64,000 nucleotides of DNA from Octopus sinensis. Lineage: Eukaryota. The position numbers and the translations under genes were made by a program. How positions within the stretch are numbered: position 1 is the stretch's first letter; each line of letters begins with the position of its first letter. The notes under the pieces were generated by a model that did no database searches, was not told the origin of the DNA, and saw nothing but the letters and a program-made list of their open reading frames with translations. This document shows, one piece after another, positions 4,501-58,240 of the stretch. The stretch lies in assembly GCF_006345805.1 (NCBI RefSeq), contig NC_043007.1, positions 75,640,001 through 75,704,000 of the forward strand, read 5' to 3'.

Positions 4501-7500
4501 TTGTATGCCTCATTGTTTCTAGGGCTGTGAGTTGATATAGATGGTAGTATTTTGAGATGAGGTGCGGTGTTTCGTTTTTTTTCTTCAGTGTTTTAATACC
4601 TATTTTCTTAATACCTTTAATTCCATCATCTACAAAAGAATGTGAATAGTGCTTTTTAGTTAGTGCTGTTCTGAGGTGTTGAAGACAGAGGTCCTGAGTA
4701 TTTTCATCAGACACTATTGTGCAAATCCTTTTTGGTAACTTAAAGGGAAACAACTAATGAAGAAACATTATCGGTTTCCTTCGATGTTATTAATCTTTAC
4801 ATTAATACCCCACATGACTATGGAATAGAAGCAATAAAATTCTGGCTGCAAAAGTGCCCCGAAGAACCTCCAGAACACATACATCAGGCTTTTATTATTG
4901 AAACTTTAAAATTTATGCCCCAGAACAATTATTTCCTTATTTGATGATACTTACTATTGACAAAAATGTTGAATTGTGATGCGAATGTAAGCGGCCCCTG
5001 ATCTGGCGAACTTAATAAAAGGATATTTTGAATTCACCATATATAACGTGTCACTGCAAAAGTATGGATATCTATTTCATCCTTATATAAGAGAGAACTA
5101 GAAAAGATATCTGGATGACTGCTTTATAGTTTGGAATGAAACCATTGATAAACTTTTGGAATTTAAATTAATACTAAATAGCATAAAACCTAACATTCAG
5201 TTTATAAAGGTATGAAGGTATGATCGTTCCAGCGTCGCCTTACTGGCACTTGGACTTGTGCCCGTGCTAGTAAGGTGCCAAGAGCACTATCTGAACGTGA
5301 TTGTTGTCAGAGCGGCTAACAGGCTTCTGTGCCGGTGGCACGTAAAAGGGCACCATTCGAGCGTGATCGTTACCAGCGTCACCTTACTGGCACCTGTGCC
5401 GGTAGCATGTATAAAAAGATTCAAGCGAGGTCGTTGCCAGTACCGCCTGATTGGACCCCGTGCCGGTGGCACGTAAAAAGCACCCACTACACTCTTGGAG
5501 TGGTTGGTATAAGGAAGGGCATCCAGCTGTAGAAACTCTGCCAGATCAAGATTGGAGCGTGGTGCAGCCATCTGGTTCGCCAGCCCTCAGTCAAAAATCG
5601 TCCAGCCCATGCTAGCATGGAAAGCGGACGTTAAACGATGATGATGATGATGATAATGATGATGAACTTTGCTTCTTGCAATAAAAGAAATGATTATCAA
5701 GGAAAATAAACTGAACTTACTTTTGATTCTGAACAACAGCAGCAAATGGATGAAGAAACAATAGACAAAACAAATTCCCCAATCATAGCAAATGATCCAA
5801 AATAAAATAAATCAGAATTTTTGCCCCAGGCATATCTAATCTGAAAAAGAAAACAAACATTTTGATGAGGAAGAGAGGAAGAGAGGAAGAGAAAGTCCTA
5901 ATAATTATGCTGCACAGAAGTATTTTTCAGACCTTTGTCAAAGAATCAGTGCCTCTCAATCTTTTAAATATCTAAGCCAGATTAAAAACTTGGATTTTTT
6001 TAAGGGACTGCACCATAAAAGTAAAACAAATCAATTAAAGAAAAATCTATTATATTATAAAGAAGGAAGACCATTGAGGTCCACTGATTGGATGCTTGTG
6101 GGCCACATGTGCTCCTGAGAGCTACGACTGAGAACTACTGATCTAAATAAATTTAGTAAAATCAACATTCATTTTCCATAATGAATGTTTCTCTGCTGTT
6201 AAAAAATGTTTAAATGTAATCTTTTATTTATTTACTCATCCCAATCACTGGATAGCAATTCTGCTGATTTTATGAAAGAAACAAAACGAAAACATTATCT
6301 ACAATTTTCTCAAATAGTTTATGTAACTACAACCTTCTATAAACCATTATTTCTTATTGAAATAGCAGTGCTTAAGGAAATTTACTTCTTCCACCTTGCA
6401 AATTTCTTAATTTTTTTGGTAGGATATTGAAGAACTGTGCGCCTTTGAACTCTAGATTATTGCAGTACCTGGTCCTGAATTTAGATGGAGTGGATGGTAT
6501 TTTGGTACAATACAATGGCGGCTAGTTCTGGAATTTGTATAACACTGAGTGCCAAAGTTAGGTACTAGCCCTTCTAGAATTTTCCATATATATATTTTTG
6601 CATATCTTTCATGCCTTCGCTCTAAGGAGTAAAGCTGTAGTTTTCTCAGCCTATCCCTGTAGCTCATCCACTGCAGTGTTTCAATCTTTTTAGTGTAGTT
6701 GGACTGCTTCAAGCTCCGCCGTTAGTTTGGCACTATGTGGTGACCATAATTGGAAGCAGTAGTCCAAGCAGCTGAGAACAAAGGTTCTCCACAGGGTCAA
6801 CATAGGTTCTTGGTCTCTTGTCTTGAAGGACCTCAGTATCCATCCTGCCAGTTGTCTGCACTTTACTGCCATCTTGCTAATGTGAATATGAAATTATGCA
6901 TCATTGCACATACTGATCCCCAAGTCTTTCACTGCCTGTGACTCTGGGATTGTTTATTTTGGTTCACTTGAATATTGAATTAGGTCATCTTGGTTTTTTA
7001 TTGCCTGTGATAATTTTGTATCATCAACATAGTTAGTGACAGTAACTGTCCTAGTGACAGTGGCCATGTCTAAGAGGGCTATTATGAACAATAATGGCCC
7101 CAGAACAGTTCCCTGGGAGGACACAACTTATGATTTGAGTTTCCTCAGAAAGGGTACCATTGGCTGCAACTACCTGACTTCTGTTTTTAAGGAAGTCATG
7201 CAACCACTCTCCTATTTTACCAGCAATGCAAAGGTCTTGTAGCTTATGACTTATCGTGTCATGATCTACCTTATCAAATGCCTTTGCAAAGTCAATGTAT
7301 ATCACACGGACATATGAATGGTCAAGCAGCAGTTTCAAAATCCAGTTATAGAGCTGTAGGAGCTGTGTGAAGCAGCTTCTTCCTGGATGGAAGCCATGCT
7401 GAGTAGTATCCAGTAGGTCATTTTCTTCTAGGAACATTATCAATTATGTTCTGATGATTCGGCCCATGACTTTACTGATATGTGAAGTCAGAGAGATTGG

Positions 7501-10500
7501 CCTGTGCTTTAATTTTTTTCCCTCTGCACAAACAGAGCATATCACTTCCTTGGATATTAGGAATCTTCACAGGTGAAAAAAAAGCCCCCTCCCCCCAAAA
7601 AACCCCCCAGATAAAATATACTTACAGTCCAAGAAGCATGGGCAGAAAAAGCAGTAATTCCACCAAGTGAAAAGATGGATGCAGACAAAATGGCAAAGGT
7701 CATGTAGGCAACTTTCTGGAAAAAAATGTTAAAATAATTTAATAGATATTTTGTGTGTGTGTGTGTGTGTGTGTGTGTGTGAGTGAGTATTTGCATGTGA
7801 GTGAGTCAAGAAGAAATAGAGAAAAAAAATTATTTCCAGTTACACTTATAATTATGAAATAGAGAACCTTTTTTTTGAATACTGAAATTGTAAATTAAAA
7901 AAAGGCAAAAATCAATACAGTATTGTAACTCCCAATCAACTACAAAACACCAATCTGTGACTGGTTACTTATTTTAATGATATCAATAGTGTTTGAACTC
8001 AGAAAATATCAGAGCGCGCAAGACTAAAGGCATAGCAAAAATGGCGTAAGGTGTAAAAGACACCAAAACTTCCCCTGGATGGTCATCTGTGTTAATTAAG
8101 GTAGAAGTCCCAAAAGTGTTTAGGCCTCAGAACACTGAGAACCTTTGCTACCAGCAGGCATATTATTTACTCTTATTATAAATATTGATGAAGATGGAAA
8201 GAGGAGGAATGGTGTTTGACAAAAGACGTTTTACTTCCATCTTCAAATCTCAGCAAACCTCTCATTCTTTTATCAGAGTTTTGTATATGGTCTTTGATAG
8301 AAACAGTTGTAAATGATATCATTTTTTATTAACTTTCTCTTTCACTCCTCAAGGATTGTAAGTACAACTTCTATAAAACAGAGAGAGAAAGGGACCTATA
8401 TTCTGGCATTACATACTAATGGATCCCTTGCTCCAAATTAGAGAGTTGTTGATGTTTTTGAGATTGCATAAGATTGCTTCTGAAAAATACCTAAAAATAA
8501 ATTGGCACGGGAGTGGCTTTGTGGTAAGTAGCTTGTTTACCAACCACATGGTTCCAGGTTCAGTCCCACTGCGTGGCACCTTGGGCAAGTGTCTTCTACT
8601 ATAGCCTTGGGCCGACCAAAGCCTTGTGAGTGGATTTGGTAGACGGAAACTGAAAGAAGCCTGTCGTATATATGTATATATATGTGTGTGTGTGCGTGTG
8701 TGTTTGTGTATCTGTGTTTGTCCCATCCAACATCACTTGACAACCGATGCTGGTGTGTTTATGTCCCCATCACTTAGCGGTTTGGTAAAAAGAGACCGAT
8801 AGAATAAGTACTGGACTTACAAAGAATAAGTCCCGGGGTCGAGTTGCTCGATTAAAGGCGGTGCTCCAGCATGGCCGCAGTCAAATGACTGAAACAAGTA
8901 AAAGTGTAAAGTAAATCTTTGCTTACTAATACCATTATAGACCCTTGTTCATGTACACATTTTTGAAATCTCTTTTACCACTTCTCCAATAGCCGTTGCT
9001 CTTTTGAAGACACCAACTTACTGAAACACATTTGGTGCACATGTATGTCATCTTTATTATTTGTCACCTCCCTTCTGACACTAAACTAAATAGTTTGCTT
9101 AACCCTTTCAGTCAATAACTTCATTTAGTTGAAACTCCACCCTTACCTACATTTCTCATTAATATCTGAGGTTATAAAGTTCAGAATGAACATCAGAAGT
9201 CTCAACATAAAAAGCTAACCCTATTCACACCCACACAGTCTGCTAGGACAACTCTTCTTTCTAAGACTAAATGAAAACAAAAATTATAATTACAAAAATA
9301 ATTGTAATTATTTTGCAGTACAGCCCACTGGAGGTTATAATTGATTGAACTCAGCAGTGGTTATGATATTGCAGTTCTGTAGTAGTTATCATTTTCTCAC
9401 AGTTCACTGGTTGTAGTATATATTGTATTAGTGGACGATTCTATTATCAAGCAGATGACCATTGGTCTGTATTGTTAAAGACGTGATTCAGTTACAATTT
9501 TCTAAATGTGTGAATCACCATTTGTTGGGTTGGTTTATGTCCAACACAGGACCTGTGGATATATTTTCCAATCCAGATCTCACCTCCTTCATCTTTGTGT
9601 GGAAATCTTGACTATGTGGTATATGTAGTTATCATTTTCTAAACACAGTGAGTTACTTGGTGACCTGATCTGAGCCAGTGTCACATAAAAAGCACCCACT
9701 ACACTCTGTAAAGTAGTTGGTATTAGGAAGAACATCCAGCTTAGAAACCATGCTAAAGCAGGCACTGAAGTTTGGTGCAGTCTTCTGGCGCGTCAGATTC
9801 CGTCATGGAAAACAGGCATTAGATATTGTTAATGATGATGATGATGATGAATATGGTGTTGGTGGTGGTGGTGGGGGTGGTGTTGGTGTTGTTGTTGTTG
9901 GTGGTGGTAGTGGTGGTGATGATAATGTTGATGAGTGAGGGCTATGGTTTGCTGAAAAGGTCAGATTAATTTTTCAATAATGTATGAAACTGGCATTTGT
10001 TCTTGCAAAAGTAAAAAGTAAAAGTTAATGATGACTGTGAGTATTATCTCATTTCATATCTCTTGTTAATATGTTTGATGTATGGAACATTTATTGATTA
10101 CATTAATTAACATTATGTAGATATGGACGTGTGGTTAAGAGGCTTACTTGGCAGCCATATGGTTTCAAGTCCCAATGTGCAACATCTTGGGCAGATGCTT
10201 TCTACAATAGCCCTGGGCTGACCAATGCCTTGTGAGTGAATGTGGTAGGCATAAACTGTGTGGAAACCAGTTGTGTATATATATATATATCATCATTATC
10301 ATCATCATCATCATTTAACATCACCCAACATGAGTTGGGTGGTTTGATCAGGGCTGGTAAGCTGAGGGGCTGCACCAGGCTCCAGTCTGATTTGACATGA
10401 TTTCTACAGCTGGATGCCCTTCCTAATACCAAGTACTCTGAGAGTAAAATGGGTGATTTTACATGCAACCAGCATGGGTGCCAATTGCATGACACCAGTA

Positions 10501-57956: not shown

Positions 57957-58064
57957 GAAAAATTTAGGTGTATTTCCATATATTTTTGATAGTTGTCATA
58001 AAAACCGATATTAGTTATGTAACCATCCTTATTAGGATAGAGAAATGTAAAAATCAGTACTTAC

Positions 58065-58240
58065 CCATAGACTTACAATACATTCTGCAGTAGAGTAACA
58101 TTAGACAAATGTCCAAAGGATCGGTACTGTAATATTTTTGTTGAAAATCCCACCATTGAAATAATGAAACACAAAATTCCAATACCCAAATGAAACGCTC
58201 CCGTTATGGTCATAGCCATGTACTGGAAACCAGCAATCAT
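58065..58240 (-). CDS. Copy B coding exon 1 (1-nt deletion near 58095)
   Basis: MIAGFQYMAMTITGAFHLGIGILCFIISMVGFS is 29/33 identical to copy A. Donor GTAAGT at 58064; upstream acceptor at 58267-58265 with 24 nt of UTR, as in copy A. Confidence 0.85.

Follow-up and report, generated by a model that had tools for sequence, protein, structure and literature searches.

The locus described here raises the question of why two neighbouring octopus paralogs, which resemble each other closely in their predicted transmembrane (TM) helices, share so little sequence in two of the loops that join those helices. We studied a window of 64,000 nucleotides from Octopus sinensis (CM016869.1:75,640,001-75,704,000, assembly GCA_006345805.1), low in G+C content (31-42%) and with abundant microsatellites and dispersed repeats. 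Positions 39748-64000 match that chromosome with 100.000% identity over 24,253 nt. The window contains two paralogs, A and B, both on the minus strand and both with five exons. The reading that we favour, with a probability of about 0.6, is that they are two members of a cephalopod-specific clade of the MS4A superfamily, with conserved helices and diversifying loops, and that they belong to a cluster evolving by birth and death.

The exon models of both genes were derived from paralog conservation, splice sites and orthologous proteins; all introns are in phase 0, and the canonical splice sites are shared by the two paralogs and the orthologs. Gene A is intact and encodes 216 amino acids. Its exon 1 (18333..18509, 59 codons) holds the start codon, TM1, loop 1 (18348-18410) and the start of TM2, ends in phase 0 at the donor TGG/GTAAGT and is 83% identical to exon 1 of O. 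bimaculoides LOC106868672. Exon 2 (13750..13821, 24 codons) encodes the remainder of TM2, with its GxxGxxxG motif, and a K/R-rich loop predicted to be cytoplasmic, and exon 3 (7626..7715, 30 codons) encodes TM3. Exon 4 (5721..5840, 40 codons in 120 nt, donor AAA/GTAAGT) carries loop 2 (5799-5840), TM4 with a conserved Glu, and the motif SSSICCCCS (CCCC at 5733-5744), and exon 5 (1395..1586, 63 codons plus stop) a disordered, putatively cytoplasmic tail. In gene B, exon 1 (58065..58240, 176 nt) includes loop 1 at 58080-58141, exon 2 (55275..55346) the remainder of TM2 and the predicted cytoplasmic loop, exon 3 (52334..52423) TM3, exon 4 (50901..51023, 41 codons in 123 nt) loop 2 (50979-51023), TM4 and CCCC (50913-50924), and exon 5 (49748..49888) the tail and stop. 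With exon 5, both genes reach past the coordinates given to them in a preliminary description of the window, made from its letters alone.

That description had reported 29/33 identical residues in positions 1-33 of the two proteins, 21/26 in the block from TM4 to CCCC and 5/21 in loop 1, together with a loop 2 differing by one residue in length. These counts are exact, the quoted peptides were all found on the minus strand at the implied places, and the length difference corresponds to the one codon by which the two versions of exon 4 differ. The asymmetry between helices and loops is real and far beyond chance, with 7/36 identical residues in the loops and 89/118 in the rest (Fisher p=4e-9). 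As to the paralog pair itself, A is intact, whereas B is frame-broken as assembled, an 'x' in the earlier peptide having masked a 1-nt deletion (see below). The non-synonymous difference between A and B in the loops (pN 0.51) is well above the synonymous one outside them (0.23; Fisher p=3e-4). Non-coding divergence between A and B gives no neutral reference, as alignment outside the exons is confined to the blocks flanking them and to repeat copies. The comparison of A with B alone cannot show selection, and the proposed diversification of the loops stands on orthologs and recent copies.

For these comparisons we used the coding sequences of nine A-, B- and C-type genes or copies, to which the middle O. 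sinensis copy of B and two D-type genes were later added, and three loop definitions (that of the preliminary description, one based on hydropathy and the AlphaFold2 (AF2) model, and a narrow one). By the Nei-Gojobori method (NG86), the comparison of O. sinensis/vulgaris with O. bimaculoides gave a loop ω (dN/dS) of 4.0 for A, with a ratio of non-synonymous to synonymous differences (N:S) of 16.5:1.5, of 2.5 for C (11.5:1.5) and of 0.77 for the B copy named B1 (9.5:3.5). The remainder of the same three proteins gave ω of 0.39-0.49. Local non-coding divergence between the species was 6.9-8.4%, in agreement with dS. In the loops of gene A the non-synonymous difference was 21%, against 8.4% in local non-coding DNA (binomial p=3e-4 to 8e-4), and loop 2 alone showed 10 N : 0 S (p=4e-4). 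When independent lineages were pooled, the loops had 51.5 N : 6.5 S and the sequence elsewhere 41 N : 25 S (Fisher p=4e-4), for a pooled loop ω of 2.3-3.2 across the three definitions. Maximum likelihood (ML) under the Goldman-Yang model (GY94), with one ω fitted over five independent pairs of orthologs or recent paralogs, gave 2.5 (p=0.022) or 2.9 (p=0.008) for the loops according to their definition (likelihood-ratio tests against ω=1), and about 0.55 outside them. Loop dN was thus above the synonymous and local non-coding rates, and not at a dN/dS of 1 or less with neutral intron divergence.

Between the B of the window and its ortholog in O. vulgaris, 16/602 sites differ in exons and 51/11826 in non-coding DNA (p=8e-8), about a six-fold excess in exons, and in exons 1-4 the differences amount to 11.5 N : 0.5 S; B1 is conserved, with 1 synonymous difference between O. 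sinensis and O. vulgaris. In the clade formed by the last B copies of both species our own tally gave about 24 non-synonymous and 0 synonymous changes (binomial p about 0.002, calculated by hand), distributed over 10 sites in loop 1, 4 in loop 2, 5 in the outer half of TM3 (52360-52378 in exon 3) and 5 in the tail, with zero changes in TM1, TM4 or the CCCC motif. The loops of the recent copies differ at 7/81 sites against 0.43% in non-coding DNA, about 20 times as much (p=7e-8). The genes of the D1/D2 pair (LOC115216970, LOC115217485), which lie 0.53 Mb apart on the same chromosome, one at 75.46 and the other at 76.0 Mb, show 24 N : 1 S at a non-coding divergence of ~1.9%. Loop 1 is their hot spot and loop 2 is unchanged, and the loops together differ at 13/96 sites against that 1.9% (p=5e-8).

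The changes in recent copies are scattered single-base substitutions, not tracts copied from other paralogs. The residues EIAN in the tail of B were considered as a conversion tract from A, and this was rejected because the third positions differ (ATC GCG against ATT GCA); these are independent point changes. RNA editing or RNA-based polishing was also rejected as the source of the exon-only differences, since no copy-specific change in the B of the window or in the last O. vulgaris copy is A-to-G.

In gene B as assembled, a 1-nt deletion between 58095 and 58096 changes a Thr codon from ACC to AC within the NVT sequon of loop 1. Exon 1 consequently measures 176 nt and not 177, and the assembled frame reads ...SNVTLLQNVL, with a stop after 55 codons. 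None of the four other B-type sequences of exon 1 compared at this place has the deletion, nor does the middle O. sinensis copy, and B is intact in exons 2-5 and at all its splice sites. The B of the window (B3) is the last of three near-identical tandem copies in O. sinensis, in units of ~33 kb each; the last unit, comprising this copy and its downstream DNA, lies partly inside the window on the minus strand (34650..64000, with its boundary near 34650), and B2 and B1 lie beyond 64000. O. sinensis B1 is intact and its protein is identical to that of O. vulgaris B1, whereas B2, the middle copy, has a 1-nt deletion in exon 4. O. vulgaris (OX597824.1) has two B copies against three in O. sinensis, and its last copy is interrupted by a nonsense codon 3 codons short of the end. 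The middle unit of O. sinensis is chimeric: between 60201 and 50718 it resembles the last copy, and from 50430 on it resembles B1. Since unequal crossing-over would give such a chimera, we read it as a product of that process; its chimeric nature also led us to reject the middle and last copies as a false haplotig duplication. In addition, a B1-like conversion tract of ~300 bp covers exon 1 of the middle copy.

The three B copies are fused by NCBI into one locus, LOC115216986, with isoforms spliced across copies: isoform X1 is B1, X2 joins exon 1 of B2 to exons 2-5 of B3 (identical to exons 2-5 of the window) and so bypasses the broken exon 1 of B3, and X3 reads B2 in the wrong frame. Each of the two O. 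sinensis frameshifts coincides exactly with a position at which the copies differ. At 58096, B1 and B2 have C and O. vulgaris B2 has T, and the base is missing from B3; at 51016, B1 has C and B3 has T, and the base is missing from B2, whose T4 run would thereby shrink to T3. By our own calculation the chance that two deletions would both fall on the ~25 variable sites in 602 nt is ~0.002. Such positions, both in one long-read assembly, agree with mis-polishing among tandem copies that are nearly identical, and we lean slightly towards an assembly artefact as the origin of both frameshifts.

The array of B copies is part of a larger cluster. Paralogs fetched from CM016869.1 lie between 75.46 and 76.01 Mb in the order D2, C, A, B3, B2, B1, D1, a cluster of at least 0.55 Mb with lineage-specific tandem duplication. 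In O. bimaculoides the order is C (+), A (-), B (-) within about 100 kb, the same A-B-C arrangement.

The reading of the diverged segments as extracellular, already proposed in the preliminary description, agrees with what could be predicted of the topology. Four hydropathy peaks and four helices in the AF2 model predict four transmembrane helices. Counted per sequence, the TM2-TM3 loop has 4.0 K and R residues, loop 1 has 1.9 and loop 2 has 0.9, and an N-x-S/T sequon in loop 1 is kept throughout the clade of A, B and C. Following the positive-inside rule, the K/R enrichment, together with this sequon and the N-in/C-in topology known from the solved MS4A proteins CD20 and FcεRIβ, would place both loops outside and CCCC and the tail inside, with both termini cytoplasmic. 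The predicted layout would then be a cytoplasmic N-terminus of only 8 residues, four helices and a disordered cytoplasmic C-terminal tail, with an invariant His in TM1, GxxGxxxG in TM2, the Glu of TM4 and, next to the membrane, SSSICCCCS, which is likely a palmitoylation site. A and B begin 8 residues before TM1 and read AMTITGAFHLGIG, and neither the LGxxQIxxG signature of vertebrate MS4A proteins nor their N-terminal domain is present. Loop 1 has 11-21 residues and no claudin W-GLW-C-C motif. As to loop 2, A has no cysteine in it and B a single one at the TM4 border, against two each in the aligned FcεRIβ and CD20. The absence of a loop 2 cysteine pair, pointed out in the preliminary description, is therefore correct and says little, the pair being a feature of CD20 and FcεRIβ that does not define the family.

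Family membership could be established only through intermediates. Neither A nor B matched Pfam CD20 even at E<=10, the direct Pfam scan giving only sub-threshold noise (DUF6185, DUF6463), and a profile of the cephalopod family run against PDB sequences found no MS4A match, only a chance 28-residue match to PscE. The closest database proteins are 'uncharacterized' entries from O. bimaculoides, O. sinensis, O. vulgaris, Argonauta and a cuttlefish, together with intron-free transcript contigs. In an alignment of 24 family sequences the invariant positions are H17 in TM1, G64, G67 and G71 in TM2, and I-x-SSSI-x-CCC after TM4; almost all members also keep the TM4 Glu. In a search of 1.84 billion representative proteins, the cephalopod profile gave 181 matches at E<=1e-3, of which the nearest non-cephalopod ones with a traceable source are scallop, whelk and mussel proteins. 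PF04103 (CD20-like) matched 53/80 distant relatives, the best at 1.4e-16, against 2/80 each for tetraspanin and MARVEL. Alignment of the cephalopod with the mollusc alignment by hhalign gave a probability of 99.9% and E=2.9e-35 over 154 columns and all four helices, with the block E-x-x-x-A-I-V-S-x-S-I-C-C-C-C-S common to both, and the mollusc profile in turn matches FcεRIβ (MS4A2) at 7.9e-16 and CD20 at 5.4e-11.

The structure model is compatible with this placement. Its mean predicted local distance difference test (pLDDT) score is 74, with the helical core above 90, helices at residues 3-33, 45-70, 77-116 and 122-148, and a disordered tail. A PDB fold search placed FcεRIβ chains at ranks 1-2 (8y81_B; 8k7t_B with a TM-score of 0.68 and a root-mean-square deviation of 3.6 Å) at weak E-values of 0.05-0.6, and CD20 at rank 19; sarcospan, synaptogyrin and CD81 scored close to FcεRIβ. 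We conclude, mainly on sequence profiles, that A and B form part of a very diverged, cephalopod-specific branch of the CD20-like/MS4A superfamily and are not vertebrate-type MS4A proteins. The name MS4A given in the preliminary description thus holds for the superfamily, by transitive profile homology and, at weak E-values, fold, and not for the vertebrate type. PPxY motifs, candidate binding sites for Nedd4-type WW-domain ligases, were seen in the tails of 12/24 members of the wider cephalopod family and in the consensus of the mollusc relatives; they are absent from the tails of A and B and from the A, B, C clade.

Diversifying selection on the outer face of these proteins is moderately supported, and several other readings were weighed against it. 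If the loops were merely neutral linkers while packing holds the helices, no adaptive diversification would be needed; this is the default pattern of small multi-pass membrane proteins, and the local loop ω of only 1.18 between A and B (loops near saturation, NG86) and the B1 ortholog pair, without loop excess, are compatible with neutrality, as is an ML test with the preliminary loop definition and four pairs that gave only p=0.056. We regard relaxed constraint alone as unlikely because drift cannot exceed the neutral rate, and the loops of orthologs and recent copies do exceed it: those of gene A by 21% against 8.4% (p<1e-3), those of the recent copies about 20-fold and those of D1/D2 at 13/96 sites against 1.9%, with a pooled loop ω of 2.5-2.9. 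A little more weight, though still that of a doubtful alternative, goes to the view that copy B and the last-copy lineage are a decaying pseudogene, part of the A/B loop divergence being decay. The frameshifts in exon 1 of the window's B and in exon 4 of B2 (out of frame in isoform X3), the nonsense codon of the last O. vulgaris copy and the bypass of B3 exon 1 in isoform X2 all speak for it, and these lesions (two frameshifts, and a nonsense codon close to the end), found in 3/5 of the B-type copies examined from O. sinensis and O. vulgaris, fit decay as well as turnover. A pseudogene, however, would be expected to change at the neutral rate with N:S near 3.4:1, and not with ~24 N : 0 S at ~6 times the non-coding rate; exons 2-5 and the splice sites of B are intact, both frameshifts are of the kind that polishing errors would leave, and loop divergence is equally strong among the intact A, B1 and C. 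Change faster than neutral, combined with conserved helices and CCCC, also argues against simple decay.

The asymmetry could also arise without selection on the loops if gene conversion homogenised the helix segments and the loops escaped it. The A/B synonymous divergence of 0.28 in the helix parts against 0.72 in the loops would agree with such concerted evolution, as would the ~300-bp tract over exon 1 of the middle copy. It is nevertheless improbable, given that in the helices as well each of A, B and C falls with its own O. bimaculoides ortholog, and that the A-B helix dS of 0.28-0.37, about three times the ortholog dS of 0.09-0.12, indicates no recent homogenisation of A and B; conversion cannot create the copy-specific non-synonymous changes seen, and where codons have been hit more than once, path-averaging in NG86 is expected to raise the loop dS. 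Least probable of all, and by our estimate very remote, is that the proteins come from another four-helix family (claudin/PMP22, tetraspanin or MARVEL) and resemble MS4A by convergence. The UniRef name of the O. bimaculoides ortholog LOC106868669 is 'Claudin', A and B lack a direct Pfam CD20 match, the fold-search E-values are weak (0.05) with sarcospan, synaptogyrin and CD81 close behind, and Zuccolo et al. 2010 (PMC2826416) held that invertebrates have no MS4A-like genes and argued that invertebrate CD20-like genes are convergent. Against this, neither A nor B gave a claudin, tetraspanin or MARVEL match in Pfam at E<=10, the distant relatives match CD20 far more often than tetraspanin or MARVEL (53/80 against 2/80 each), and the chain of profiles is strong across the four helices (E=3e-35, then 8e-16 for FcεRIβ and 5e-11 for CD20). 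Later work accepts MS4A genes in ascidians and amphioxus (bioRxiv 10.1101/2022.08.15.492342), and in the literature we found nothing relevant on MS4A/CD20-like proteins in molluscs or cephalopods, nor on these locus names.

Some further points tell against selection on the loops as we read it, or limit its reach. The data comprise only about 35 loop codons and five pairs, and the tests based on synonymous changes gave p=0.06 to 0.008. The loops were picked because they looked diverged, an ascertainment bias that the hydropathy/AF2 definitions only partly remove. In the recent copies the excess extends beyond the loops to TM3 and the tail, and the short gene-conversion tracts in the B array complicate the counting of lineages. 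The protein collections searched yielded no transcript-derived sequence belonging to the clade of A, B and C, and gene A has no matching protein there for O. sinensis or O. vulgaris, O. bimaculoides LOC106868672 (83% identical) being the only annotated ortholog.

Under the preferred reading of conserved helices and selected loops, the helices and CCCC would be held by purifying selection, and the outward loops, together with the outer half of TM3, would change faster than the neutral rate. If MS4A proteins are a guide, the conserved helices probably serve as a core for oligomerisation or signalling, and the variable loops probably as a surface that recognises a ligand or a partner protein. Such a recognition function seems the most economical mechanism; ligand binding, which the preliminary description had put forward, was on its part drawn purely by inference. 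The cluster itself would evolve by birth and death, through duplication by unequal crossing-over, short conversion tracts, positive selection on new copies and occasional disabling lesions.

Gene A is probably an unannotated gene in the RefSeq assembly of O. sinensis. The lesson for annotation is that a gene which looks intact was passed over, and that three copies were merged into one locus whose isoforms are stitched around two possible assembly frameshifts. The tail of A contains an 18-bp coding tandem repeat (1417-1512; 5.3 copies, 94% matches) that encodes (PPNAAY)n; in the O. bimaculoides ortholog the repeat is (YPNVAY)3, so that unit and number differ between species. Intron 1 of A harbours a 2.7 kb (ATG)n microsatellite (14375-17117; 98% pure, ~914 copies), which yields spurious poly-Met, poly-Asp and poly-Val open reading frames of up to 880 aa. 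Intron 2 contains an imperfect, telomere-like interstitial (AACCCT)n array of ~150 bp (12981-13131) and intron 3 a reverse-transcriptase fragment (7051-7443, minus strand).

The 31 kb between A and B contain only transposon remains. Among these is a non-LTR (long terminal repeat) retrotransposon on the plus strand (24777-28633), with open frames of 508 aa (no Pfam match) and 723 aa (RVT_1 at 4e-28, zf-RVT), which may be a recently active copy, and a 3' fragment of a related element (30398-30919, plus strand). A remnant of the N-terminal part of a Tc1/mariner transposase (45183-45764, minus strand; HTH_Tnp_Tc3_2 at 1.4e-19) is annotated at the homologous O. vulgaris site too. A dispersed repeat family of ~410 bp (83-92% identical), intronic and intergenic, occurs at 8496-8916, 35246-35676, 53005-53405 (inverted), 53921-54322 and 61856-62081, and a second family (~200-400 bp) near 11500-11940, 20770-21100, 23640-23845, 32418-32747, 38497-38880, 59490-59670 and 62735-63063. 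No tRNA-like part was detected in the dispersed repeats of the window, and the ~410-bp intronic family is not recognisably tRNA-derived.

The octopus pair shares with the vertebrate MS4A proteins (CD20/MS4A1, FcεRIβ/MS4A2 and the olfactory necklace chemoreceptors) its four helices, the termini predicted inside and the arrangement in tandem clusters. Both have conserved helices, with G-x-x-H-x-x-x-G in TM1 and a small-residue motif in TM2, and variable extracellular loops, and they are connected by transitive profile homology and by the top fold ranks of FcεRIβ, with their weak E-values. The differences are as clear: the octopus proteins have no direct Pfam match, AMTITG in TM1 takes the place of LGxxQI, an invariant SSSICCCCS follows TM4, loop 2 has ~14 residues and no cysteine pair, and the tail carries Tyr/Pro repeats. 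The N-terminal cytoplasmic domain of vertebrate MS4A proteins has about 40-60 residues, against the 8 of the octopus pair. The nearest non-cephalopod relatives are mollusc CD20-like 'uncharacterized' proteins (for example Pecten maximus LOC117341013, Ylistrum balloti LOC132548162, Babylonia areolata LOC143291548 and Mytilus galloprovincialis VDH99996), which have the same CCCC block after TM4 and Pro/Tyr-rich tails but differ in their size (255-330 aa), in a real N-terminal domain, in retaining LGxxQIxxG and in matching Pfam CD20 directly. Claudins and PMP22 are likewise small four-helix membrane proteins with juxtamembrane cysteines; the octopus pair has no Pfam match to them and a far shorter loop 1 without W-GLW-C-C, and profile and fold both favour a CD20-like protein.

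The pattern of loop diversification is not new, being already known for mammalian and ascidian MS4A genes. In ascidians and amphioxus these genes form clusters with lineage-specific duplications, their diversity is concentrated in the two extracellular domains, and recent paralog clades have positively selected sites there; the same pattern of conserved helices and diversifying loops has been described for mammalian MS4A chemoreceptor genes (bioRxiv 10.1101/2022.08.15.492342). The ascidian and amphioxus genes are deuterostome, are directly recognised as MS4A and are in some cases expressed in sensory palp cells, whereas the octopus clade is protostome, far more diverged and known here from genes alone. 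The octopus genes are in this sense a new, very diverged clade of a known superfamily.

MS4A proteins are important both for immunity (CD20, FcεRIβ) and for an unconventional olfactory subsystem of mammals, and their origin outside vertebrates has been disputed. A cephalopod family filed as 'uncharacterized', with one member mislabelled 'Claudin', repeats their evolutionary signature and so provides a concrete candidate family of recognition receptors at a time when the chemosensory and immune receptors of octopuses are still being catalogued. A more speculative extension, to which we give little credence at present, is that octopuses would have, in this cluster, a protostome equivalent of the MS4A receptor clusters: a repertoire of tiny palmitoylated four-helix proteins with loops under diversifying selection, used for chemosensation or for self/non-self (immune) recognition, with an origin independent of the chemotactile receptors derived from nicotinic receptors. 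If true, such a recognition repertoire would overturn the older view of invertebrates as animals without MS4A-like genes.

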